NCBI RefSeq assembly: GCF_006345805.1
Contig: NW_021826191.1
Span: forward strand, 1-13,267
Origin: Octopus sinensis
Taxonomy: Eukaryota
Direction: 5' to 3'
DNA length: 13,267 nt
In this document: positions 1-13,267 of the stretch, piece by piece
Layout of the letters: every line of letters begins with the position of its first letter
How positions within the stretch are numbered: position 1 is the first letter of the stretch
Position numbers and translations under genes: made by a program
The notes under the pieces: generated by a model
What the model was told of the DNA's origin: nothing
Database searches by the model: none
Seen by the model: the letters and a program-made list of their open reading frames with translations, nothing else

Positions 1-254
1 AGAATGTAAATAAGTCTAAATTTTCGCTGAAGATCATAAGAAATATCCATGATTGAAAGTTTAGTCATACCGAGGTTTTATAAAAATGACTAAATTGTTA
101 ATCATGTATATTTGTTTTGACCTTCATTAAATATTTACACTGTCTACTATGCAAGACTTGTGTTTCTATAATTTGCACTAATTACACTGTATGGAATTTC
201 TAACAGCACCTCTGTACATGGTCTGTATGGCTATCACTGCCAGTTTCCTCTGTG

Positions 255-385
255 ACCACCAGATCAGAGAGAGTAAGGATCTCTGTCAAAGGTTTTCTAC
301 AGGTCATTGAACACAATTTTAGCAGATACTTCTCTTGCACTTACCCTACAATCACCACATATAATAACTTTTAATGATAGCTCTT
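255..385 (-). mobile_element. Possible highly degenerate Tc1/mariner transposase fragment
   Basis: Minus-strand translation ELSLKVIICGDCRVSAREVSAKIVFNDL*KTFDRDPYSL loosely resembles the mariner HTH region (DRRVTVRE...IxxxDL...RWVPHxL). By-eye similarity only; contains stops. Confidence 0.3.
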
Positions 386-625
386 TTTATGCTTCTTTCT
401 TTTCAGAATCACTAAGTGTATGTGTATTACTAATAATCTCACACCAAAATGAAATATAAAAACCAACTGTACAAAAAAGAAAAGGGTATGTAAAAACATT
501 CACAGAAAGCATTTAAAACGTTGCTGCTATACAAATACATTGCCGAAATCATGAACTGATTATTCAATAAAATTTCTACAGACAAGTATTATCAATAAAA
601 ATATTTAAAAGCATTAAAACATTAC

Positions 626-710
626 CTTTGCAATTTTCTGATCATGTTCTACAAACTTTACCTCACCAAATGCATCACAGGGATTTGATGCCTCTTCGTC
701 TCTAAGGTTT
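626..710 (-). CDS. TRPM: Exon of TRPM-like cation channel gene (MHR1, PxDAFG motif); 85 bp, phase 2 in / phase 0 out
   Basis: Acceptor cttttgtttgtcgttgatAG, donor AAG|GTAATG. Encodes (R)NLRDEEASNPCDAFGEVKFVEHDQKIAK, matching the spacing of human TRPM2 MPTDAFGDIVFTGLSQKVKK (recalled). Confidence 0.85.
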
Positions 711-1335
711 CTATCAACGACAAACAAAAGCCAAATGAACAATTGGAGTAAATTTGTGATGGGGAAGGTAGAAAAGGAAAATGACAAAATCAAAGAGATA
801 AAGAACAACTCCAATGAAAAATACAAATATTCACAGATATAGAGATATAAATCTATGCACAGAATGGATACTTATCTTTCAATTTAGTTGAATAAACCAT
901 GATTAATTTTAAATAAACTTAAAAGGAAAAGCAAAGAAACATTTTGCCATCAGAAGTAAATGGAGAAAAATGAGGCACACTGGGGAATAGTGATTCCACA
1001 TCTGGGATGATGCAGCCCTTACACATACAGGTCTCATAAGACCACATCAATAAAGAAAAACAGGTGACTCATCTGACTGGCATGAAGTCACTTACCAATA
1101 CACACTAAATTCTGACCTATAGTTGTGCTGTGTCCTCTCTTTGCCTTTTTTACCACTACTACAATAGCCTCTGCTCCACAGAACTGGTTGCTCTCTTTCC
1201 ACCCTATCCAGGTACCACTGATACACACATCTCTTGTGTCCATTTGACTTGATCCCCACACTAACAATATAAAAATTGAATTAAGTAGGTGTGAAAAGAA
1301 ACTGCATGAGATGTCCGGTAGTGTGTCTCCTTTTA

Positions 1336-1338
<3 letters not shown>

Positions 1339-1372
<34 letters not shown>
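1339..1372. repeat. (CT)n microsatellite
   Basis: Pure CT run, 17 units. Confidence 0.95.
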
Positions 1373-1374
<2 letters not shown>

Positions 1375-1897
1375 TTGTTCCCCTCTTGACCATGGTAAGA
1401 TAATGTTGATCTTATTGGATTTATTCCCCTTGCTTACTGTACAACTAAATTCATATGAAAGGTAATATTGGGTATGTGTATTTGTCACAGTAAACCGTAT
1501 CAGATATTATTTCTAATGTAGTTCCTCAATATATTAACAGTATTATCATTATTGATAGTATATATTCATTACAAATAAACAAATCAGAAAAATCTATTAA
1601 AATTTATGTTTTAATATACAAAAATATTTTTATTTTGAAAATTAGCATTCATTTTCTATGAAATTTGAAAATATATGATTATAATTATTATAGTTATGTA
1701 ACATTACCTGATATTACCTGGATTGGCAAAATATATGTATTCTCAGCATTAGCCAACATAGTAATTGATAAAAACTGTTTCTTAATTAATAATAATTTAT
1801 TGGTGAGTAAGAAAAGACAAGCTCCGATGAAGGCTATGCTTTGCTGAGGAAATCTAATTAGACTAAATATGTAAACAACAAGATCATTAGCGGTCAG

Positions 1898-2006
1898 AAA
1901 AATACCATGTGGTATTAGCTTCAAGTATTTATATTGAGTTCAAGTTTTACATTGCTCAACCTTTCATTTTTGTCTTTCTGGAGTTGGGGAGTCATTAAAA
2001 AGTACC
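1898..2006 (+). mobile_element. Very degenerate copy of the tRNA-derived SINE family seen at 3461-3686
   Basis: Colinear traces: aaaatacc..gtggtatt, tgagttcaa (B-box-like), aaaagtacca. Many substitutions. Confidence 0.45.
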
Positions 2007-2149
2007 AAAACATGTCAGTGACTGTTGCCTGCAAATGCAAAGGTCATATCAAATTAGTATCAGACACTGAGCCAAAGTATTTATTTCATAAATATTATCA
2101 ATTATTTAAAATTTCCTCAAAATTTAAAAAATAATGGCAGTACAGTTAT

Positions 2150-2339
2150 GAGCTGGCAGAATTGTTAAAACATATTACTTTTGATACTTAACATTCTGAG
2201 TTCAATTTTTGATGAAACCATCTTTGTCTTTTGTCCTCTTGGAGTTTGATAAAATAAAGTAGCAGTCAAGTGCTGGTGCTCATGGTATTAATTTAACCAT
2301 TCCCCTAAAAATTGCTGGTCTTGTGCTTAAATTAGAAAC
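2150..2339 (+). mobile_element. Degenerate tRNA-derived SINE, same family as 3461-3686
   Basis: gagctggcagaa head, acattctgagttcaa B-box, gataaaataaagtagcag body and cccctaaaaatt...ttgtgc tail are all colinear with the reverse complement of 3461-3686. Confidence 0.7.
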
Positions 2340-3460
2340 TCTTTTCCATCCAGATAAGAGTTAGTAGATAATTTCTCTCACATCTCTATCAATAGTGTAT
2401 ACATGATGTGATGGCTATTATGACTTTCCCATGATGCAATTGTTTTAGATTCAACATTCAACTTCAGATCAAGTCATTTGACAAACAAGTACAACATTAA
2501 AATTAATGGTTGTATTCATCAGTGAATATTTACACATGCATTCACATATGTGCATGCACACACATTCATGCACACCACACCTGTGTACGGAGTTGGTCAA
2601 CATGCTGTTGGCATTTACATTTCTCCGATATCCCATTCATCCAATAAAAGTCTTTGTAAACAATGATTGATTTTCTTATAAAGGCATCAATCCACAGCCA
2701 TAATTAATCCCTAAAGGTGAATTTTCCAGTATCAACCCCTAAAGGTAAATTTTCCCCTAAATTTTTCCTTTCACTTTTTAACCCCACTCCTTTGCTTAAC
2801 TGTCCCCTTATAAGTATTATCTCCCACTGGAATTAAAGATTATTTCTTTTTTTATCCAACTCCTTCCCTCATATTCCATCCACCACATACAAGTGCACAT
2901 ACATATTCACACTGCTTGAATCTTATACTTACCCTCTCACGCATATACATTATATAGTGGCACACATCTCTCCACACACACCTGTTGCTATTTACTCTTT
3001 CCTTATTTCTTTTTCACCTGAGTTCCACATGAACATCAACCACCCATCTCCACTCTCCTCTGCTAGAAATCCCATACCTACTAACACTTCTTGTATCCAA
3101 TATCATGATGACCATCTATAATAAGACATAGACAATCCTCATCTCCTTCCCTTAATTTTCTCTTTCCCTCTCCCCCCTCTCTCTCTCTGTTCTTCCATTT
3201 GCGCATGGCTTAATATACTGACTTTGTTTATATTTCTCATATTTTTGCTTCTTTGAATTCCTTTTGCTGAGAAACACAAAGATCTCATTTTCCCGTATAT
3301 TGTATTTCATGCATTAATCCTGCTTACCCCTCAGTATCTTTGGAAGCAGAGGAAACTGGAATCTATTGAATTATTAAATAACATAAAACGACATTTTGAA
3401 CTTCATCCCAAACCTCCAAAAAGTATGTATTTGATGTAACCTTTGAGACTTACTCATATT

Positions 3461-3686
3461 TAATATTCTTTTCTACTCTAGGCACAGGGCCCAAAATTTT
3501 TGGTAGGGGGACAGTCGATTAGAACGACCCTAGTACGCAACTGGTACTTAATTAATCGACCCTGAAAGGATGAAAGGCAAAGTCGACCTTGGTGGAATTT
3601 GAACTCAGAACGTAAAGACAGACGAAATACCGCTAAGCATGGTAATGTTTCACCCAGCATGGTAATGTTTCTGCCAGCTCGCCACC
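3461..3686 (-). mobile_element. tRNA-derived SINE (Octopus-type), near full length
   Basis: Minus strand begins ggtggcgagctggcagaaac (A-box region) and has B-box gagttcaaattcc (plus 3594-3606). The body gtcgactttgcctttcatcctttc...aagtaccag is recalled as an abundant octopus SINE. Two decayed copies are in this window. Confidence 0.8.
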
Positions 3687-3863
3687 TTAACTCATATTTA
3701 ATACTAAATATGAAAATATAAATATAGTGAATATAACAATAAATGTATGATGAGATGGCTATCATTCATCATCCGTGATGAAGTCATTTTACGTTCAACA
3801 CAAACTTTGGTGAAGTCTCTTGCCAGAAAGTAGAATTCCAAAATGAGTAAATCTTACTCTCTT

Positions 3864-3898
3864 TGTGTGTGTGTGTGTCTCTCTCTCTTTCTGTATCC

Positions 3899-3940
<42 letters not shown>
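3864..3940. repeat. Compound (GT)n/(CT)n microsatellite
   Basis: Direct reading. Confidence 0.95.
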
Positions 3941-3944
<4 letters not shown>

Positions 3945-4494
3945 GCATGAGTATAATATGAAGTATCATTAGCATACACTATGGATTTCCCACTGAGTTG
4001 ATTTACAGCAATCTGATCCTTACAAAACAGAGAAAGAAATCGATATCATAAACTCTAACTTCTTTCACCAAAAAAAAAAATGAGTCTGATTGTTAAAATT
4101 ATTAATACTAGAGCTGTCTTAAAAGAATTAAGTATACAGAAATGATGAATTCTCATTTTGCCAACCAAATTTTTTTTGAGCCTTCTGTTGACTTTTTTCC
4201 GCTATTGATAATAACACCAGTGATCTAATGGTGTAAGAGTTTTTGAAGTGTAGCAACTTAGTATATTTCAACATATTATGTGAAAACTTATGTATAATCA
4301 ACAATCAATTAATTTTAAGTTATCTTCATTGCTTGTTGTTTTGGGGTTACTGACATCCCCAGAAGTTTTTGTCAACTAGTTACTTGGATAATCTCGGTTG
4401 ACCAAAGTTTTTCAACTCACTATGTAGTATAACTGAAATCCTTCTACACATGTACTTATATTTATCAGAATTATGAGCTTATTGCTTGAATTAC

Positions 4495-4532
4495 CTCAAT
4501 TTTATGTTTTCCTGAATCCATTTCTTTACATC
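4495..4532 (-). CDS. TRPM: Exon of TRPM-like gene (N-terminal WIxENIK motif); 38 bp, phase 0 in / phase 2 out
   Basis: Strong acceptor aattttttttattttcAG, donor GAG|GTAATT. Encodes DVKKWIQENIKL(R), cf. TRPM2 SWIPENIKKK. Phases fit both neighbouring exons (AG+A = AGA, Arg). Confidence 0.8.
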
Positions 4533-5920
4533 CTGAAAATAAAAAAAATTTAAATTTGAATGTTTGAAGGAATGATGGAGTTCCAACATCTGACATTAAT
4601 TCTATGACAGAGAATCTCAAAATTTACAACAAATTATAGAGAAGACATATAAACAGTACAAGACACGAGTAAAGCCAAGAGTATCAGGTGGAGATAATCT
4701 CATCACTATTAATACAGATACACATGATTTCAGTTTGTCTTATTTACAATTTTTTGCATGGTACACTGGTTTTGACATTGGACTGTAATGAATGAAATTT
4801 TCTGGATAGAAACAGTGCCACATCATGATAACAGAATTTTGCTTAACCAGTTTAATCATTTGTGTAAAACTTATAAGCCATGTCAGACTTACAAAGATAT
4901 GATTATAATCTATTGAAAAGGTTGCAGGACGCAGTGAAAATTTTAGAAAAATAAAGAAGGAAATGAGTGAAAATTTTACCGGTGAGTTTGTCAGATTATA
5001 AGGCACTAAAAGAGAATGACTCTCCCCAGACACAAGAGAATAGCTCTAATATATCTTTAAAAAATGACTAAAATGAATGGGAAAATGAATACAAAGGACA
5101 GTTAAATAGTTCTGTTTATTTAATATTTTATAGTCTCCCGCCCCCTTGAAAGCATATTGCACTTCCAACCTGGGTAACTTTTTAACTTGAATTCACTAAA
5201 CATTCTACATTTCCAAGTGCTAAGTTTTGGAAATGGAACAAATATTCCATAAGGTTTCTGATTATTCATCTCTACAAGAACATGATTTTCATTCCATACA
5301 ATACGTTCATGATAGAATAGAACTTAAAGGAATATGGCACTGTCAAAGCCAACAAAGTCATCGAATGTTAACCTTGCTCTGTCTTTGATGCATTTTATAC
5401 GTTGACAGATCTGACTGAGATAATGGAGGTATACAGAGAAGGGTAATATTAATGATGAGTCACTGGAAGAAATGGTCAACTGTGACGTGAGAATGCAGGG
5501 TTTAACAAATAAAATTATGGAAGATCAACGGAATTGTGATATACAATAGAATAGACCTATGCAACAATGTGTCAGCACAGAAGGACAGATGTCTAACTGA
5601 TAATGATGATATTTAATATTTATCATATTCATAGTTTTATATGAAGCACGTGACAACAATTTTATAGGAAGAGAAATACAAATTTATGATAACTTCTTAA
5701 TTCCCTTCAAGCAGAAATTGAAACAAGGAATTGAAACTGGGAATTGAAACCAGGCCAGTGTCTCAGTTCACTGGATGTTTATCTTCCAATGTAAGAGGCT
5801 AAGGAATGTCCAACTATAACTACATTCTTCAAAGACTTTCTTCCTTTGTTTATGAAGTCAGTACCATCCAACTTTCATATTATATTCTGATTATTTTCCT
5901 CTTTTTCCCCCACTAAATAG

Positions 5921-6028
5921 AAACCATGCTAATGTAGACATTGGAGCTCAACACAGTCCTCCAGATGTTTGGATCCTATTGGATTGTCCAACCTACGTTA
6001 GCAAGGAAGATGGCAGTTAAATGATGAT
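5921..6028 (+). mobile_element. Degenerate 3' end of a SINE/LINE-tail repeat
   Basis: aaaccatgc...gtccaacc...gcaaggaagatggcagttaaatgatgat resembles a recalled octopus repeat 3' end terminating in (GAT)n. By eye only. Confidence 0.45.
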
Positions 6029-6045
6029 ACATAATTGTGTGTATG

Positions 6046-6052
<7 letters not shown>

Positions 6053-6088
<36 letters not shown>
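6053..6088. repeat. (AT)n microsatellite, left flank of the 153 bp element
   Basis: Direct reading. Confidence 0.95.
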
Positions 6089-6090
<2 letters not shown>

Positions 6091-6241
6091 TAGCAAAAAC
6101 TGTCCGATGAACGGCAACGGGAAACTCAGAGTAACAGGTTATGTTGAATTTTTTGCTGCTTTAAATAAAGCATTTTACACTACCACTGGTATTTGAGTAC
6201 TCTTTTTTCCACCTTGTTTCACATTTATGTGTTTACTCCGG
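6089..6241 (+). mobile_element. Short hammerhead-bearing element (solo or 5'-truncated pseudo-LTR of a second Penelope-like family) embedded in (TA)n
   Basis: 153 bp of unique sequence bounded on both sides by (TA)n. Contains a minimal hammerhead motif near its 5' end, AATAAA at 6164-6169 and a T-rich tail, the same layout as the 3' pLTR of the large element. Confidence 0.65.
6100..6137 (+). ncRNA. Minimal type I hammerhead ribozyme-like motif (variant or decayed)
   Basis: CTGT / CCGATGA (U4C variant of CUGANGA) / A-CG-GCAA-CG-G / GAAA / CTC-A-GAG / TA / ACAG. Stem I is 4 bp, stem II has a GNRA loop, stem III is palindromic, and the cleavage triplet is GUA (after 6133). Confidence 0.7.

Positions 6242-6263
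<22 letters not shown>
6242..6263. repeat. (TA)n microsatellite, right flank of the 153 bp element
   Basis: Direct reading. Confidence 0.95.
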
Positions 6264-6273
<10 letters not shown>

Positions 6274-6603
6274 TAGGGAGAGACAGACAGACAGAGATAA
6301 ATGCACACGGATGTACACAGCAGCATCTTACACATACTGACAAATAAGTATGCACACACACATACACAAGGTGCATAAATTTCCCACTTGCTATTCCTGC
6401 CTAAAGTGATCCTTCGACTATCTCCAATGAAAAAATTTAACAAACAAGCAATAATTATATTACAAGAATTCAAATTATTAAAACGATATTTAAAATACAT
6501 TTTTATTTAAAACATTTTACTCTTTATCCTCTCAAGAAGAAAAAAGATTTTAAATTTATTAATTGTTCACAACATGAAGTGATAAAAAAAGATATTATCT
6601 TAC

Positions 6604-6698
6604 TTCCCAGTGAGCTTCTCCTTTAAATATTAGACGTTTTAGAACATCAGGTTTGTTCCATTCCAATCCGAGCCTCATATTTTCTATGTTGTTCTTTG
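6604..6698 (-). CDS. TRPM: Exon of TRPM-like gene (MHR3/MHR4 junction, LxxxWNxxD motif); 95 bp, phase 1 in / phase 0 out
   Basis: Acceptor tctatattacAG, donor GAA|GTAAGA. Encodes (A)KNNIENMRLGLEWNKPDVLKRLIFKGEAHWE, with W-N-x2-D-x5-I-F-x5-W spacing identical to TRPM2 QLKLAVAWNRVDIARSEIFMDEWQW (recalled). Confidence 0.85.
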
Positions 6699-6749
6699 CT
6701 GTAATATAGATTTTACATGAAACAGTCTGTTGATATTAAAATGTTCTTG

Positions 6750-6914
6750 TGGCTGTGTGGTAAGTAGCTTGTTTACCAACCACATGATTCCGGGTTCAGT
6801 CCCGCTGCATGGCACCTTGGGCAAGTGTCTTCTACTATAGCCTTGGGCCGACCAAAGCCTTGTGAGTGGATTTGGTAGACAGAAACTGAAAGAAGCCCGT
6901 CGTATATATGTATT
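6750..6914 (+). mobile_element. 5' half of a tRNA/CORE-type SINE (OR-like), interrupted at its internal (TA)n
   Basis: tRNA-like head tggctgtgtggtaag..., B-box-like ggttcagtccc (6793-6803), CORE-like ccttgggcaag (within 6811-6830). Ends in cccgtcgtatatatgta. Confidence 0.8.
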
Positions 6915-6915
6915 A

Positions 6916-7126
6916 CACACACAAACACACACACACACGCAAAACACACACACACAACAGATACATATACTCCCTCACATATACGCATATACATACTCAC
7001 TAAACTCGATATATACAACAATATTTACACACCCACACTCATACAGATAAATAAATTAATTATACAACTAAAAACTCACAACCAATCTCATATACATAAC
7101 ACTCCTATGAAAACAACATTAAATAC
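6916..7126 (-). repeat. Inverted copy of element-internal segment 11623-11834
   Basis: Base-by-base comparison: the reverse complement is identical except for one A/T homopolymer indel (211 vs 212 bp). Confidence 0.95.
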
Positions 7127-7427
7127 TTATATTTTTTTTATTTATACTTTAATTATTTAAATTATTATTTTTATACTTTAAAATTTTGATTTTTTAGATT
7201 GGAAGTCCACCTGAAGATTGTCGATCAAGACAAGAACGATTGTAGTGGCGGTTTTTTTGACTATTTATTAAAATTTTATGTATTAAGTCTTTCCTTGTTT
7301 GTTTTGCAAAATAGTGGTTTTGTCTCTATAATATTTTTATATATTTTACTATAAAATTGGATTTAATCCTAAATCTGATTTTTTCCCTGTAAATTTGGAT
7401 TTATTCCCTAATATTATTATTTATATA
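7123..7427 (+). repeat. 5' pseudo-LTR (direct repeat of 12792-13099)
   Basis: ~305 bp copies differing by about seven single-base homopolymer indels and one substitution. Confidence 0.95.
7207..7248 (+). ncRNA. Minimal type I hammerhead ribozyme, 5' pLTR copy (reads GAA rather than GAAA)
   Basis: CCAC / CTGAAGA / TTGTC-gatcaa-GACAA / GAA / CGATTG / TA / GTGG. One A of the conserved GAAA is missing relative to the 3' copy. Confidence 0.75.
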
Positions 7428-7510
7428 ATATTGTGATATTTTGTATATTGAGTGTAATACCTCAATTTCGTAAATTAATAGAATTTTACAGGTAAGATAG
7501 AACCGCTGTT

Positions 7511-9983
7511 TTGGATTCATCTTTGAAAGATATTCCTATTCCTTCTAGAAAGGAATTTATCTTGAAACTTGTTAATAATGTTAAAAGAATTTTAGTTCTA
7601 GAATTATGGAAAGCTTTTTACTATAATTTTTATTTATTTAATGATATTGATAGTAGGAATGATAATTTTACCTCTAAATTTAATCTAGAAAGGAACCTCC
7701 ATTTAATAAAGATTACAATTACTTGAAGATAGTATATGGAAGGTGGTAAAAAATATTGAATTCCATAAATACCCAAATAGAAATAATGAATATTTAAGGA
7801 ATTTAGCAATTAAAATTAAAGATATGAGAAATATGGATGGTATTATAGTACAATCTGATAAAACAAGGAACTTATATAAATTAGATGTTAATTTATATGA
7901 TAAACTATTAGGGAAAGAAATAATTAAAAAATATAAAATTGTTCCAGATGATATTCTTTATAATATTAATAAGGCCTCTAAAGTAGTAATGTTAAAATAT
8001 GAGTTGGATAATAAAACTGAACCTTATGTACCTCTGCACCCCAGAATTACTCTTAAAGACCATAAAGATAATTTTTATTCAGACCCTAAAGTTAGATTAA
8101 TTTGCCCATGTAAATCGGACCTAGGTAAATTAAGTAAATTTATTTTAGATAAATATATTGATAAGTTAAATAAACTTAATTATTTAAAATTATGGTTTAG
8201 TAATAATAATACATTGAAATGGTTTAATAATTAAAGATAAAAATCGTTATAAATTTATTCAAATAGATATAGATAATTATTATTCTTCTATTAATGAAAT
8301 GGTGTTTAATAAAGCGCTTATTTTCGCAATGAATAAAGTGGGCATGTCACGGGAAGAAGTTATGTAATTAAAATGGCTAGGAAATCGCTAATTAAATATA
8401 AAAATAAATTATGGCTAGGAATGATACTAGAGATTGTTTTGATATACCTATGGGAGCACCAGATTCTGCACAGGCTACTGATTTAGTAGGTATTTTTCTT
8501 TTATCTGAACTCCAATTAGAAAATCTTAAGATAGAGGGTGGTTTATATAGAGACGATCTTCTACTAATTACAAAGAATTGTACTAATAGGAATCTAGAAG
8601 TATATAAGAAAAAACTATATAGTTTCTTTAAAAGATATGGTTTACGTATTACTATATATAAGGAGAATTATAATGTTAATTATTTAGATGTTAATTTTAA
8701 TCTTATACAGGTAAAACACAACCATATCATAAACTTAATGAGAACCTTAGATATATAAATGTTAATAGTAATCACCCATTTTCTATTAAAAAATCGTTGA
8801 TTAATAATTAGTAAACGTATTTCATTACTCTCTTATGATATAGAGATTTTTAATAAACATGCTAATTATTATAATGAGCCCTTAGAGGGGCAGGTTATAA
8901 TAGAATATTAAATTTTATAATATTAGCGATAAAGATTTAATGTGTTAATTTTCGAGATACTTCTAATAATAATTTAATTTTGTTAGGTTTAGTGGTAAAA
9001 ATAATAGATATTATAAAAAAAATAATAAAAATGATAAAAATATAAATAAGAATAATAATAATAATAATAATAAAATATAATAATATAATATAAATAAGAA
9101 TAATATAAATAAAAATAAATTTAATAATTATTATAATAATTATATTGATAAATTTAATAATATTAATAATTCCTTAAATGCTGTACATAGATATAATTCT
9201 GATAATAATTTTAATAAAATAAAGAATTATAAATATATTTATAATAATGATAATAATAATAAGGTTAATAAGAATAAAATTTGGTTAATAGTTCCTTATG
9301 GAGATCAAGTAAACGAATATTATTAAAGAGATTTTAGATGTTATAGAACTATTTATTAGAGATAATCGTAAATATAGAAACATTTTCTCTTTTAATAATT
9401 TTGGAGTTGGTTACTCTACCACTAATAATGTTGGTAACATTATTTCTTCATTTAATAAATATAAACTGAATAATTTTTATAAAAAGAAATTATTTGATAA
9501 TAATATTATAATGATAAGACTTTTATTAATTGTACATGTAGAGATAAATCTAATTGTATATTAAATAATAATTGTGATATTAACGATGTAGTGTATAAAT
9601 GTATAGTTACATTACATGATAATAACTTTAAGAATAATAATTACACAAAAGCGGTTTATATAGGTTCTACTTCCTCAAAAATAAAACTAAGAATCGCACA
9701 ACATATGAATTCTTTTAAAAATAAAAACTTAATCAACTCAACCGGACTTAGTAAGTACATTTGGAGTCTTAAATCACTAAATATTAATTATAGTTTAATA
9801 TGGGAAATAATTTGTGAAACTAAATCATATAATATAGGAGCTAATTGTTGTTATTTATGCTCTAATGAGTTTAAAGAAATTTTATTTTATAAGTATGATA
9901 ATTTACTTAATACTGGTGAAGAGCGCAAAATAAAATGCAGACATAAGTTACTTTACCTATATAATAAGTTTCATGATAAATAG
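7511..9983 (+). pseudogene. Frameshifted PLE polyprotein: reverse transcriptase + linker + GIY-YIG endonuclease
   Basis: N-terminal SLKDIPIPS, DKT (7857-7865), TLKDHK, motif A DIDNYYSSI (8266-8292), motif B MGAPDS, YRDD (8546-8557), thumb YINVNSNHP, linker IWLIVPY, CTCRDKSNC (CxCx5C, 9531-9557), VVYK...YIGST, CYLC and KCRH; stop at 9981-9983. At least ten small indels break the frame. Confidence 0.93.
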
Positions 9984-10410
9984 CAATAATAGTTCCCTTT
10001 TAGGTTACTTTAGTTTAGTTTATATTAGTTTAGATTATATTTTTGGTTATGTTGTCTAGGCTTTAATTATAGTTAGTCTTTATTGATATTTCTTGTTTTA
10101 AAGTTCATTTTTAATGTATAAATTTAACAGTTTATGGTACGTTAAAACTTTAATAATTTATATTAGATTTTTTATTTTTTTATTTTTATTTTTATTTTAT
10201 TATGTATTTTTATTTTGCATTTGTTATATGTATTGGAGGATATATTTATTTTTTGGGTGTTATTTAGTGGTTTTTTATTGAGTTTTGTAGTATGTGTGAA
10301 TGCTTAAGATCCCTTTGTTTTTTGTTTTTTATTTGGTATGTTGAATTGACAGATTTTATTTGGGTATTGTCTTTTATATAAAGTACACACACCCATAACA
10401 AATATAAGTG

Positions 10411-11165
10411 CCCACTTCATTCGTTGTACTTGGGATTGCATGTGAGCCTCAGCATATGCACCTAACGGCCACTCCCGCCCCACATGGATAAATAAACACA
10501 TACATCCCAAAAATGGGAGTAATCCCATTCACACCAATTATATGTATACAATTATACACACTAGAATAATACATAACTAACCCAAATATACAGAACACTA
10601 ATAATCACCAACTAACCACCATCACAAATGAAACCCACACCCATACAATGACAAAACTCCCCCCCCCATACCCTATTTACACACCCCATAGTAATCCCAA
10701 TATATTCATCCATATATGGACGCAAGTGCGTGAAGCACATGCACATAATTAGTACGTACAACCCCTAATACACACTAATATATACGTATCAAGCTCGACC
10801 TCCACAGCGATACGTTTACACCCACTTACACCCAGATGGGTGAATTGCACAACCAGTGAATGCTCACACACACGGGCGCGATTACATTGTTGCATATATC
10901 GAGCCAAAATAGTATGCATATGTACATGTGAGGGGTACACGCAAATGAAGTGAGCGTGTACCCCCTGCATTTATACCCGTGCGTGAATATACACATGGAG
11001 ACTACCACACAGGTACAAATTGTTTTGAAATGGGAGCCCCATCACTACACTTAATGTATACTCTCACCCATCCGCACGGATGTGTAAGTGTATCTCCGGC
11101 GCATATGTTGAGGCTTATATGTAGCGTTGTGGAAGGGAACGTCGTTTAAATTGTGAATGAATGGG
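10411..11165 (+). ncRNA. Putative large structured RNA domain in the PLE 3' trailer
   Basis: 24-bp long-range helix 10436-10459/11101-11124 (19 WC + 5 G-U), outer helix 10411-10422/11155-11165 and several internal hairpins. No family assignment. Confidence 0.55.
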
Positions 11166-11180
11166 TGGAGTTGGGAATTG

Positions 11181-12760
11181 TAACCGGGTGGTGGACTAGC
11201 GTTGCTTGGAATTGTGAATGGATTAGTGTGGTAGTGAGGTATGCATCGAGAATAGTTATGGGTTACTGTAAGTTGTTTGTTAGAGCTGCTAGGGTGAGCT
11301 AAAGCTCATAAATGTATATAATGATTTTCATGGTAGTTTTTAAAGAATCCATTCATAATAAATTTTTTGTAGCGTTGGTTTGCTACGTGGATATAGTTTT
11401 TAGTTCCATTATTATATTTCTCCATTCATATTTTGAATGACGTTTACTTTCTATGGCGCGTATTCTTTTTTTACATAAGTTATTTCTATGGTAACGTATT
11501 TTTGTTTGGTTTTTTAACGGCTAAGAATTTTTTCACTTCATAATTTGTAACTGAATTGTAAGTATGTATTTGATTTATCCTTATGTCATATTGTTATTTC
11601 TGATATTTTGGTTAATTACGATGTATTTAATGTTGTTTTCATAGGAGTGTTTATGTATATGAGATTGGTTGTGAGTTTTTAGTTGTATAATTAATTTATT
11701 TATCTGTATGAGTGTGGGTGTGTAAATATTGTTGTATATATCGAGTTTAGTGAGTATGTATATGCGTATATGTGAGGGAGTATATGTATCTGTTGTGTGT
11801 GTGTGTTTTGCGTGTGTGTGTGTGTTTGTGTGTGAATGTGTATTTGGGTTTGTTATTTAGGTTTTGGGATGTATGTGTTAATTTGTCTGTGTGGGAGGGA
11901 GTGGGTTTTGGTGTATTTTGAGGTTCATAAGTTAGTATAGGTTTGTGTATAAGTCTTGGGTCTGTGTTTACGTGTGTGTATTTGTGTGTGAATGTTTAGG
12001 TTTCGGGGATTGCTATATAAGTTTGTTATAGGGTTTAGCAAAGGGAGATTTTATCGTTATATGCTTTTATGAGTTTTGGTTTATCATGTTTTTTTTAGGT
12101 AATTCGTGGTAATTTGTCTATTTTCGATGTTGGTTATTTTTTACATTGTTTCATTCATAATTTTTGAGTGGTGTTCGTTTTGCCACGTGAATAACCGGGT
12201 GGTGGACTAGCGTTGCTTGGAATTGTGAATGGAATAGTGTAGTAGTGAGGTAGGCATAGACAATGGGATTGGGTTACTGTAAGTTGTTTGTTAGAGCTGC
12301 TAAGGTGAGTTAAAGCTCATAAATGTATTTAATGTTTTTTGTGGGTGTGTAAGTATTGTTGTATATGTCGAGTTTAGTGAGTATGTATATGCGTATATGT
12401 GAGGGAGTATATGTATCTGTTGTGTGTGTGCGTGTTTTGTGTGTGTGTGTGTGTTTGTGTGTGAATGTGTATATGGGTTTGTTATTTAAGTTTTGGGATG
12501 TATGAGTTAATTTGTCTGTGTGGGAGGGAGTGGGTTTTGGTGTATATTGAGGTTTATAAGTTAGTATAGGTATGTGTATAAGTCGTGGGTCTGTGGTTTA
12601 CGTGTGTGTATTTGTGTGTGAATGTTTAGGTTAGGGGGATTACTATATAGGTTTGTTTTAGAGTTTAGCAAAGGGAGATTTTATCGTTATATGTTTTAAG
12701 AGTTTTGTTTTATCATGGTTTTTTTTAGGGGATTCGTGGTAATTTGTCTATATTTTCGAT
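11181..12760 (+). repeat. Diverged internal tandem duplication: A1 11181-11328, B1 11713-12128, A2 12192-12339, B2 12340-12760
   Basis: Blocks align directly, roughly 85-93% identical by eye. The second unit lacks 11329-11712. Confidence 0.9.
11623..11834 (+). repeat. Source segment of the 5' inverted repeat
   Basis: Reverse complement of 6916-7126. Confidence 0.95.
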
Positions 12761-12791
12761 ATGGATTATATATAGGTTATATATGGATTAT

Positions 12792-13098
12792 ATACTTATA
12801 TTTTTTCATTTATACTTTAATTATTTAAAATTATTATTTTTATACTTTAAAATTTTGATTTTTTAGATTGGAAGTCCACCTGAAGATTGTCGATCAAGAC
12901 AAGAAACGATTGTAGTGGCGGTTTTTTTGACTATTTATTAAAATTTTATGTATTAAGTCTTTCCTTGTTTGTTTTGCAAAATAGTGGTTTTGTCTCTAAT
13001 AATATTTTATAATATTTTACTATAAAATTGGATTTAATCCTAAATCTGATTTTTTCCCTGTAAATTTGGATTTATTCCCTAATATTTATTATTTATAT

Positions 13099-13099
<1 letters not shown>
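12792..13099 (+). repeat. 3' pseudo-LTR
   Basis: Direct repeat of 7123-7427; its 3' end (tttatata) merges into (TA)n. Confidence 0.95.
12876..12918 (+). ncRNA. Minimal type I hammerhead ribozyme, 3' pLTR copy, complete core
   Basis: Stem I CCAC/GTGG; CUGAAGA 12880-12886; stem II TTGTC/GACAA; GAAA 12903-12906; stem III CGAUUG; cleavage triplet GUA, cut after 12914. Confidence 0.88.

Positions 13100-13128
<29 letters not shown>
13094..13128. repeat. (TA)n target tract
   Basis: Direct reading; one extra A at 13110. Confidence 0.95.
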
Positions 13129-13129
<1 letters not shown>

Positions 13130-13267
13130 GCGTGTGTGTGTTTGTGTGTCTTGTTTGTCCCCCTAGCATTGCTTGACAACCGATGCTGGTTGTTTATGTC
13201 CCCGTTACTTAGCGGTTCGGCAAAAGAGACCGATAGAATAAGTACAGGGCTTACAAAAGAATAAGTC
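13130..13267 (+). mobile_element. 3' half of the SINE begun at 6750 (runs off the window)
   Basis: gtgtgtgtttgtgtgtc...gcttgacaaccgatgctgg...cttagcggttcggcaaaagagaccgatagaataagtac is the continuation I recall for this octopus SINE after its internal (TA)/(TG) tract. Confidence 0.75.

Follow-up and report, generated by a model that had tools for sequence, protein, structure and literature searches.

In TRPM channels the WIxENIK and PxDAFG motifs precede the helix that carries the WN motif, and a stretch of the Octopus sinensis genome in which the WN segment comes first raises the question of what kind of protein could be encoded there. The stretch (contig NW_021826191.1, positions 1 to 13,267; the whole of these 13,267 nucleotides [nt] is referred to here as the window) carries three minus-strand exons, A, B, and C, which a first-pass annotation had read as parts of one TRPM-like gene with permuted or tandem N-terminal modules. 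By sequence identity they are assigned to the gene LOC115221043 or to a near-identical copy of it, and they lie where one TRPM MHR1/2 domain of the SLOG fold ends and the next begins. The explanation that we favor, and hold to be moderately probable, is an octopus-specific, poreless tandem-SLOG gene within a duplicated block, whose product would be a multivalent binder or a channel regulator.

The exon junction and the modules that it joins

The three exons (Table 1) have canonical AG/GT splice sites and compatible phases, as first annotated, and together they translate into an exact, stop-free frame of 73 residues. Exon A, the last exon of SLOG module 2, opens with 2 nt of a split codon, closes in phase 0, and encodes (A)KNNIENMRLGLEWNKPDVLKRLIFKGEAHWE. 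SLOG module 3 opens with exon B, which begins in phase 0, ends in phase 2, and encodes DVKKWIQENIKL(R); exon C, the second exon of that module, runs from phase 2 to phase 0 and encodes (R)NLRDEEASNPCDAFGEVKFVEHDQKIAK, the codon shared by B and C taking its first 2 nt from exon B and its third from exon C. Exon C aligns with the PTDAFG segment of TRPM2 and of Nematostella TRPM2 (nvTRPM2; 6co7). The position of the WN segment ahead of WIxENIK and PxDAFG, contrary to the canonical order, holds in comparison with both nvTRPM2 and the canonical O. bimaculoides TRPM2 (P0020), in which the WILENIK exon starts from about residue 98 and the LEWNRSD exon spans residues 510 to 542.

Table 1. Features of the window and their positions (a slash marks a splice boundary)
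Feature	Coordinates	Strand	Details
Exon A	6698..6604	minus	95 nt; acceptor tctatattacAG/CA; donor GAA/GTaaga
Exon B	4532..4495	minus	38 nt; acceptor ttttattttcAG/GAT; donor TTGAG/GTaatt
Exon C	710..626	minus	85 nt; acceptor gtcgttgatAG/AAA; donor AAG/GTaatg
Intron A-B	4533..6603	minus	2,071 nt, GT...AG; read-through gives ..HWE-VR-stop
Intron B-C	711..4494	minus	3,784 nt
Insertion	6914..13105	plus	6.2 kb, AT-rich (GC 13-41%), intronic, upstream of exon A; not present in the paralogous copy L001
Terminal direct repeats of the insertion	7118..7448 and 12787..13119		about 330 nt; 84-95% identical
Broken open reading frames of the insertion	7710..9980	plus	last one with a GIY-YIG-like motif (..AVYIGSTSSKIKLRIAQH..)
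Inverted repeat in the insertion	6916..7099 and 11651..11834		184 nt; 100% complementary; arms 4.5 kb apart
Weaker copies of the inverted repeat	12340..12462
SINE-like elements	~3480..3700 and ~6770..6900		two, tRNA-derived, opposite orientations, intronic (the first in intron B-C)
Microsatellite (CT)17	1339..1372
Microsatellite (TC)n	3878..3940
Microsatellite (AT)18	6053..6088

An alternative is that separate single-SLOG genes lie in tandem, or that the repeats are collapsed or duplicated haplotypes merged in error by gene predictors. Short single-module models (P0126, 250 amino acids [aa]; P0130, 156 aa; and P0135, 254 aa) can be read in this way, as can the model P0007, which ends after exon A. 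However, the short models are fragments bounded by splice sites, and the 38-nt exon B has no in-frame ATG, as had been pointed out. Nor was any start or terminal exon that could feed exon B found between exons A and B: tblastn searches with head, tail, and MHR3/4 peptides, at word size 2 and E values up to 5, returned only noise, with no further family exon in the two introns of the window or in L001, a paralogous copy described below. The earlier statement that intron A-B holds no MHR4-continuation exon is borne out by the same sensitive search. AATAAA hexamers are not enriched in that intron (three found, at sites including 6560 and 6507, versus about four expected by our own base-composition estimate) and thus give no evidence of a poly(A) site after exon A. 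Each array has a single N-terminal head and a single acidic tail, not one of each for every module. The modules are merely 45 to 63% identical within a protein, which shows that they are not haplotype or assembly duplicates, and the identical four-module order is present in three independent assemblies. We regard separate genes or an assembly artifact as very improbable.

One module corresponds to a full MHR1/2 domain plus a single helix. Module 3 aligns with nvTRPM2 over residues 88 to 448 (E = 1.5e-55), with the WN helix aligned last. The crystallized zebrafish MHR1/2 construct (7aov; 424 aa) stops immediately before this helix, and the Pfam MHR3/4 model PF25508 opens at it (P0010 residues 842 to 895), so that the WN segment is assigned as the first MHR3 helix and exon A, judged by these alignments, sits at the MHR1/2-MHR3 boundary. 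The first-pass label of an MHR3/4-junction exon was therefore wrong. Its proposal of one protein with repeated MHR1-3 modules stands in part: tandem modules in one frame are upheld by gene models and conservation, but each consists of MHR1/2 and one helix rather than MHR1-3. A permutation of domains within a module is rejected, as in the models complete modules lie in series with the canonical order inside each.

The AlphaFold2 model of P0007, which holds two modules, has predicted local distance difference test (pLDDT) values of 80 to 94 in module 1 and 65 to 87 in module 2, with a disordered head. Its Foldseek matches are led by 7aov (TRPM MHR1/2; TMt, 0.78) and include the MHR1-3 domain of TRPM7 (8sib; 0.68). 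The linker and head are of low confidence, the predicted template modeling score is 0.55, and the inter-module geometry is unreliable. The module of the window departs from other TRPM proteins between WIxENIK and DAFG, where it reads WIQENIKLRNLRDEEASNPCDAFG, with 13 residues between the motifs and one Cys, compared with about 45 residues that include a CxCG..H pattern in the canonical octopus channels P0015 and P0020. The Cys-rich Zn-binding insert, a TRPM hallmark, is thus not present in this module; such a segment is reported in all TRPM types except some TRPM5 (PMC13143021).

A predicted family of tandem SLOG arrays in Octopus

The 73 residues correspond to residues 840 to 912 of the 1,423-aa O. 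sinensis protein of LOC115221043 (P0001; 100% identity, E = 1.8e-75), with exon A at residues 840 to 871 and exon C at residues 884 to 912, each 100% identical. The query was padded so that long proteins could enter as candidates, and two length ranges were searched. Six other Octopus proteins match the 73 residues at 84 to 100%, the identities with paralogues and with orthologues of O. bimaculoides and O. vulgaris being 84 to 96%, and the second search added two 'TRPM-like 2' isoforms of 216 and 221 aa. The A-B-C junction is common to seven other Octopus models besides P0001, and the comparison with other cephalopods that the first-pass annotation had proposed finds the same junction in gene models of O. 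bimaculoides and O. vulgaris.

The domain scan that it had also suggested counts three to four TRPM SLOG modules and no transmembrane domain in the array's own models. LSDAT_euk (PF18139; gathering cut-off, 25.7 bits) matches four stretches of P0001 (676 bits), four of the O. bimaculoides protein P0002 (767 bits), and three of P0003 (597 bits), the product of the O. sinensis paralogue LOC115221041; exons B and C of the window encode the opening residues of the third stretch in P0001. Both the LSDAT_prok and LSDAT_euk Pfam models match every module. The current RefSeq protein of O. bimaculoides, P0270 (1,474 aa), and a model of O. vulgaris, P0272 (1,427 aa), share this four-module layout by sequence, and the precomputed Pfam entries of P0270 are LSDAT families only. 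In the Pfam scan of P0001, P0002, and P0003, neither Ion_trans nor the MHR3/4 model PF25508 is matched; Ion_trans is likewise not on record for P0270, and the window itself has no Ion_trans exon.

The genes of this family span ranges of 185 to 602 kb (320 kb for LOC115221043), and O. sinensis and O. vulgaris share two or more paralogous arrays, P0001 pairing with P0007 and P0003 with P0272. Among the best 150 matches from 1.84 billion representative proteins scanned, direct SLOG-SLOG arrays that lack a pore were confined to Octopus. A gene family that strings together three or four TRPM SLOG domains is, as far as predicted models can tell, octopus-specific and poreless in its own models. The architecture is not described in the literature that we searched, where two recent surveys of TRPM evolution that include octopus (PMC13143021, PMC7306681) and surveys of cephalopod TRP channels are silent on multi-SLOG proteins. 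The proteins are already in public databases, unnamed, and the loci are named in no paper that we found.

Comparison between species supports, at the level of sequence, tandem SLOG modules in one reading frame. Each module is 76 to 82% identical to the O. bimaculoides module at the same position, and in a maximum-likelihood tree the module positions 1, 2, and 3 (the complete ones) form their own well-supported clades; this positional orthology makes the array older than the split of O. sinensis and O. bimaculoides. A single clade made up of octopus sequences alone (support, 100/99) takes in all modules as well as the SLOGs of the neighboring TRPM-like channels P0012 and P0013, and this clade is nested within a mollusc TRPM2-like clade. 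The linkers between modules are kept in frame across species.

A source for such an array is suggested by the canonical O. bimaculoides TRPM2 gene (L003, encoding P0020). Its WILENIK exon starts in phase 0 (cag/GAA ACA GAA), and its orthologue of exon A, tattacag/CA AAT ... TGG CCA/gtaaga, has a phase-0 end and one extra codon; the acceptor context, the split Ala codon, and the exon boundaries are shared with exon A, and the next MHR3 exon also starts in phase 0. The block from WIxENIK to the WN helix is hence bounded by phase-0 introns, so that its tandem duplication keeps the frame and gives the A-to-B join seen in the window. We infer that the array arose by unequal, intragenic tandem duplication of this symmetric exon block, which would have produced in-frame repeats. 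The modules would then have diverged, losing the Cys-rich Zn-binding insert and changing pocket residues, and whole arrays would have been copied by segmental duplication, with the window's copy ending up 3' truncated in module 4 and tail to tail with a paralogue. The array would thus be a clean case of in-frame exon-block duplication between phase-0 introns.

Gene models, copies, and the neighboring channel

Several observations count against an intact and poreless array; those concerning gene models, copies, and array ends are weighed here, and those concerning the ligand pocket are given below. All of the array models are computational and lie in a locus of near-identical duplicates, where homology-guided prediction can build chimeras. 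The O. vulgaris orthologue P0007, whose module 2 matches that of P0001, is modeled as ending after exon A (..HWE/VR-stop), and no assembled RNA-derived protein with the junction was found, the padded-query protein searches giving genome-derived models only. Branch lengths of the modules in the tree are several times those of the canonical channel SLOG, and the window differs from L001 by five nonsynonymous and no synonymous changes. Given these two features, relaxed constraint or pseudogenization may be suspected from the sequences; the fast evolution of the modules fits diversification or decay alike. Hybrid SLOG domains, in which early exons of one module are joined to later exons of another, are present in P0003, P0005, P0006, and P0012, as where the part of module 1 up to ..EKIPE is followed by TEVKIPAVAVMVGGGPGT from module 2 or by the SLOG of the channel itself. 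On the models, these hybrids may be true skipping between equivalent exons or an artifact of homology-guided prediction.

L001 (O. sinensis CM016875.1:13463577-13516209) contains, at its positions 10001 to 42734, a partial copy, in inverted orientation, of the module 2-module 3 region; this copy lies antisense inside the range of LOC115221043, is 96 to 97% identical to the window with introns included, and is annotated as the 'TRPM-like 2' isoforms of 216 and 221 aa. It keeps all three exons and their splice sites, and exon B is identical, splice sites included (L001 32106-32144). A 1-nt frameshift in the exon after exon C (..NFS/CQTYLFL-stop) makes this copy look like a pseudogene. All five differences between exon A of the window and its counterpart at L001 25173-25268 are nonsynonymous (E>A, F>S, K>E, G>R, and H>P); four of the five lie within 15 nt at the linker end, and no difference is seen in 60 nt of flanking intron or in exons B and C. 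The cluster could reflect gene conversion, diversifying selection, or chance, with counts too small to test. On the strand of LOC115221043, L001 4427-4473 (minus) carries a module-1-type copy of exon B (KKWIEENIKLR/gtaattcaag), which places the inverted copy in the intron between the head exons and the first module, and its position implies that the first ~148 kb of the LOC115221043 model hold head exons only.

These copies invite the reading that the exons are a decaying by-product of segmental duplication, that is, intact-looking remnants that are unexpressed or yield nonfunctional RNA, with the long frame a construct of prediction. P0001 is truncated in module 4 and its 320-kb range holds the inverted copy with its frameshift, exon divergence between the window and L001 is about the same as intron divergence, and the changes in exon A are 5 to 0 in favor of nonsynonymous ones, although five nucleotide changes are too few to test selection. 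A 6.2-kb insertion lies 216 nt upstream of exon A, protein searches found no assembled transcript, and the modules evolve fast. The frame is nevertheless open over about 1,400 codons in several paralogues and three species, with splice sites intact where checked; positional orthology and in-frame linkers have been kept since the O. bimaculoides split, and at least two paralogous arrays persist in O. sinensis and O. vulgaris. We judge decay to be quite unlikely.

The insertion is probably a degenerate retroelement outside the coding sequence of the gene (Table 1). The alignment of the window with L001 holds on both of its flanks and not across it, and a relative of its terminal repeat is located at L001 8051-8362. 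A Pfam scan of its open reading frames gave no match; the GIY-YIG-like motif suggests, from sequence, a Penelope-like retroelement. The target-site duplication is ambiguous because the junction lies within a TA microsatellite. The perfect arm identity of the inverted repeat within the insertion suggests a very recent event or an assembly artifact. The DNA of the window is otherwise AT-rich animal sequence with microsatellites and elements resembling short interspersed nuclear elements (SINEs), at which ARAGORN called no tRNA.

The ends of the arrays bear on whether a pore could follow. In each predicted protein of the family, the C-terminus comes from reading through a splice donor into the intron: HWE/VR-stop in P0007; VVK/VSK(QTIL)-stop in P0002, P0270, P0272, P0006, and P0126; NEE/VNF..-stop in P0001; and FTK/M-stop in P0003, where AT/GTAA is read from protein ends, since other models run FTK/I.... 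The VVK/VSK end recurs in three species, which, for predicted models, points either to polyadenylation at a conserved intronic site or to a failure shared by predictors over a long intron. In O. bimaculoides, P0270 ends within module 4 (VVVVK/VSK-stop), and the models XP_052830018-21 (P0263 and P0013), whose accessions come next after that of the array gene, begin within the final third of a module 4 and then run through the acidic tail (spliced ..AFAK/IFADIISSGHSGYKYGYKN..), a SLOG, and MHR3/4 to the first transmembrane helices. P0013 and the O. vulgaris model P0010 continue from the last module into a TRPM channel, and P0010 adds Ion_trans, which is seen only in models running on into the neighboring channel gene.

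In O. bimaculoides and O. vulgaris, array and channel thus follow one another on a single strand, which would permit a very long transcript for a multi-sensor channel. The models fit both outcomes that the first-pass annotation had offered, a multi-sensor channel or a soluble multi-SLOG protein. The array would then be the 5' part of one very long TRPM-like channel gene, laid out as head, modules 1 to 4, acidic linker, fifth SLOG, MHR3/4, and pore, with the poreless models being truncated predictions or intronic-polyadenylation isoforms. The start of P0263 and P0013 in a module 4, together with the end of P0270 inside module 4, speaks for this layout, as do the link to Ion_trans in P0010, the end of P0003 if it is a donor read-through, and a SLOG-SLOG-MHR3/4-pore model in an unrelated animal (P0259). 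However, P0010 is an unusual model from which most of MHR3/4 and S1-S3 is missing, RefSeq keeps array and channel as separate genes, and the VVK/ exon that ends models in three species could mark a true 3' end. For the window's own gene no channel can follow: LOC115221043 is cut at its 3' end within module 4 and lies tail to tail with LOC115221041, their 3' ends 8.4 kb apart, so that this convergent copy cannot run on into a pore. We hold a multi-sensor channel to be unlikely, though it is the alternative to which we give most weight.

A further reading combines these elements. All modules share exon boundaries and phases, so that splicing from exon k of one module to exon k+1 of any module further along would keep the frame, and a TRPM-like channel locus might carry, in its tandem SLOG exon blocks, a combinatorial 5' sensor cassette. 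Its products could include channels with several SLOGs in series, channels with alternative or hybrid SLOGs, and poreless multi-SLOG decoys made by intronic polyadenylation. Hybrid modules of the kind expected occur in the models P0012, P0005, P0006, and P0003, and a link between array and channel occurs in P0010 and P0013. We consider such a cassette a long shot, less credible than decay.

Ligand pocket, related proteins, and proposed function

The pocket residues add to the points that count against the favored explanation. In human TRPM2, the MHR1/2 residues in contact with ADP-ribose (ADPR) are M215, Y295, R302, and R358 (PMC6759353). By alignment, the equivalents in the canonical octopus channel are M, F, R, and R, respectively. 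They are A, F, R, and P (R in O. bimaculoides) in module 1; A, a deletion, R, and R in module 2; V or A, S or F, K, and K or Q in module 3; and A, S, and R in module 4, whose alignment does not cover the last position. The contacts are thus only partly kept: the R302 equivalent stays basic (R or K) while the others vary, the Y295 equivalent being F, S, or P or deleted across modules, and the R358 equivalent being P, K, Q, or G in several modules, with R confined to module 2 and some copies of module 1. Modules 2 and 4 have an intact GGPGT loop, and in modules 1 and 3 the loop is degenerate. Given the variation in pocket residues, the modules probably have different ligands or have lost some of their binding.

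Returning to the poreless tandem-SLOG gene that we favor, our best guess from these comparisons is that its product would be a poreless, multivalent nucleotide-binding protein with modules of differing specificity. Each module would fold alone into a bi-lobed nucleotide-binding clamshell, as does isolated human MHR1/2, which by itself (residues 53 to 446) is soluble and binds ADPR with a Kd of ~0.5 uM (bioRxiv 10.64898/2026.03.30.715250). On this view the poreless array would bind or buffer ADP-ribose-like ligands as a soluble multivalent protein. It may also, or instead, partner with and regulate the paralogous TRPM-like channel, in the manner of poreless N-terminal TRPM isoforms.

The closest relatives are the TRPM2-like channels of Nematostella, zebrafish, human, and octopus (P0015 and P0020), of whose MHR1/2 SLOG each octopus module is a full counterpart; exon A is orthologous to the corresponding exon of canonical octopus TRPM2, with the same boundaries. 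In contrast to these channels, the octopus array repeats the domain three to four times head to tail, its own models lack MHR3/4 past one helix, the transmembrane domain, the TRP helix, and NUDT9H, and its modules lack the Cys-rich Zn-binding insert and keep the ADPR contacts only in part. The isolated MHR1/2 constructs (zebrafish 7aov and human 53-446) have boundaries almost those of one octopus module, and they fold and bind ADPR in soluble form. They are one-domain laboratory constructs, whereas the octopus arrays are natural multi-domain frames and putative binders.

TRPM2-S and melastatin-S resemble the octopus array in being N-terminal TRPM parts without a working pore, and they offer a model for a regulatory role. 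TRPM2-S retains two transmembrane helices. Both come, by splicing or truncation, from a channel gene that has one MHR region, whereas the octopus SLOG is multiplied and annotated as a gene of its own. TRPM2-S is reported to act as a dominant negative on the full channel (PMC6230687).

Proteins with two SLOGs are also found in other animals. In the oyster XP_019919132 (P0125) and the jellyfish P0127, MHR3/4 lies in between the two, and these look like merged tandem genes. P0259 (GCA_039555335.1), a RefSeq model of 1,439 aa from a 39-kb gene (L002, CM076868.1:62601161-62646214), has a duplication boundary other than that of octopus and keeps its pore; it may represent an independent SLOG duplication inside a channel. 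Three or four SLOGs without a pore are present in none of P0125, P0127, and P0259. Stand-alone SLOG/LSDAT proteins of prokaryotes and eukaryotes usually pair one SLOG with an effector domain, whereas the octopus arrays have several SLOGs and no recognizable effector, only a disordered head and an acidic tail. The fold family and a proposed binding of nucleotide-derived ligands are shared (Burroughs et al. 2015, cited in PMC13143021).

The MHR1/2 SLOG is the ligand sensor of TRPM2-type channels, and the literature that we searched treats it as a single copy tied to a pore. If the octopus genes encode a poreless protein with three to four diverged sensors, the TRPM sensor would be capable of working free-standing in animals, and the arrays would offer naturally varied binding pockets for the study of SLOG ligand specificity as well as a candidate soluble buffer or regulator of ADP-ribose-type signaling in cephalopods. 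If the array is instead the N-terminus of a channel, it would represent a TRP channel architecture without precedent in the searched literature.

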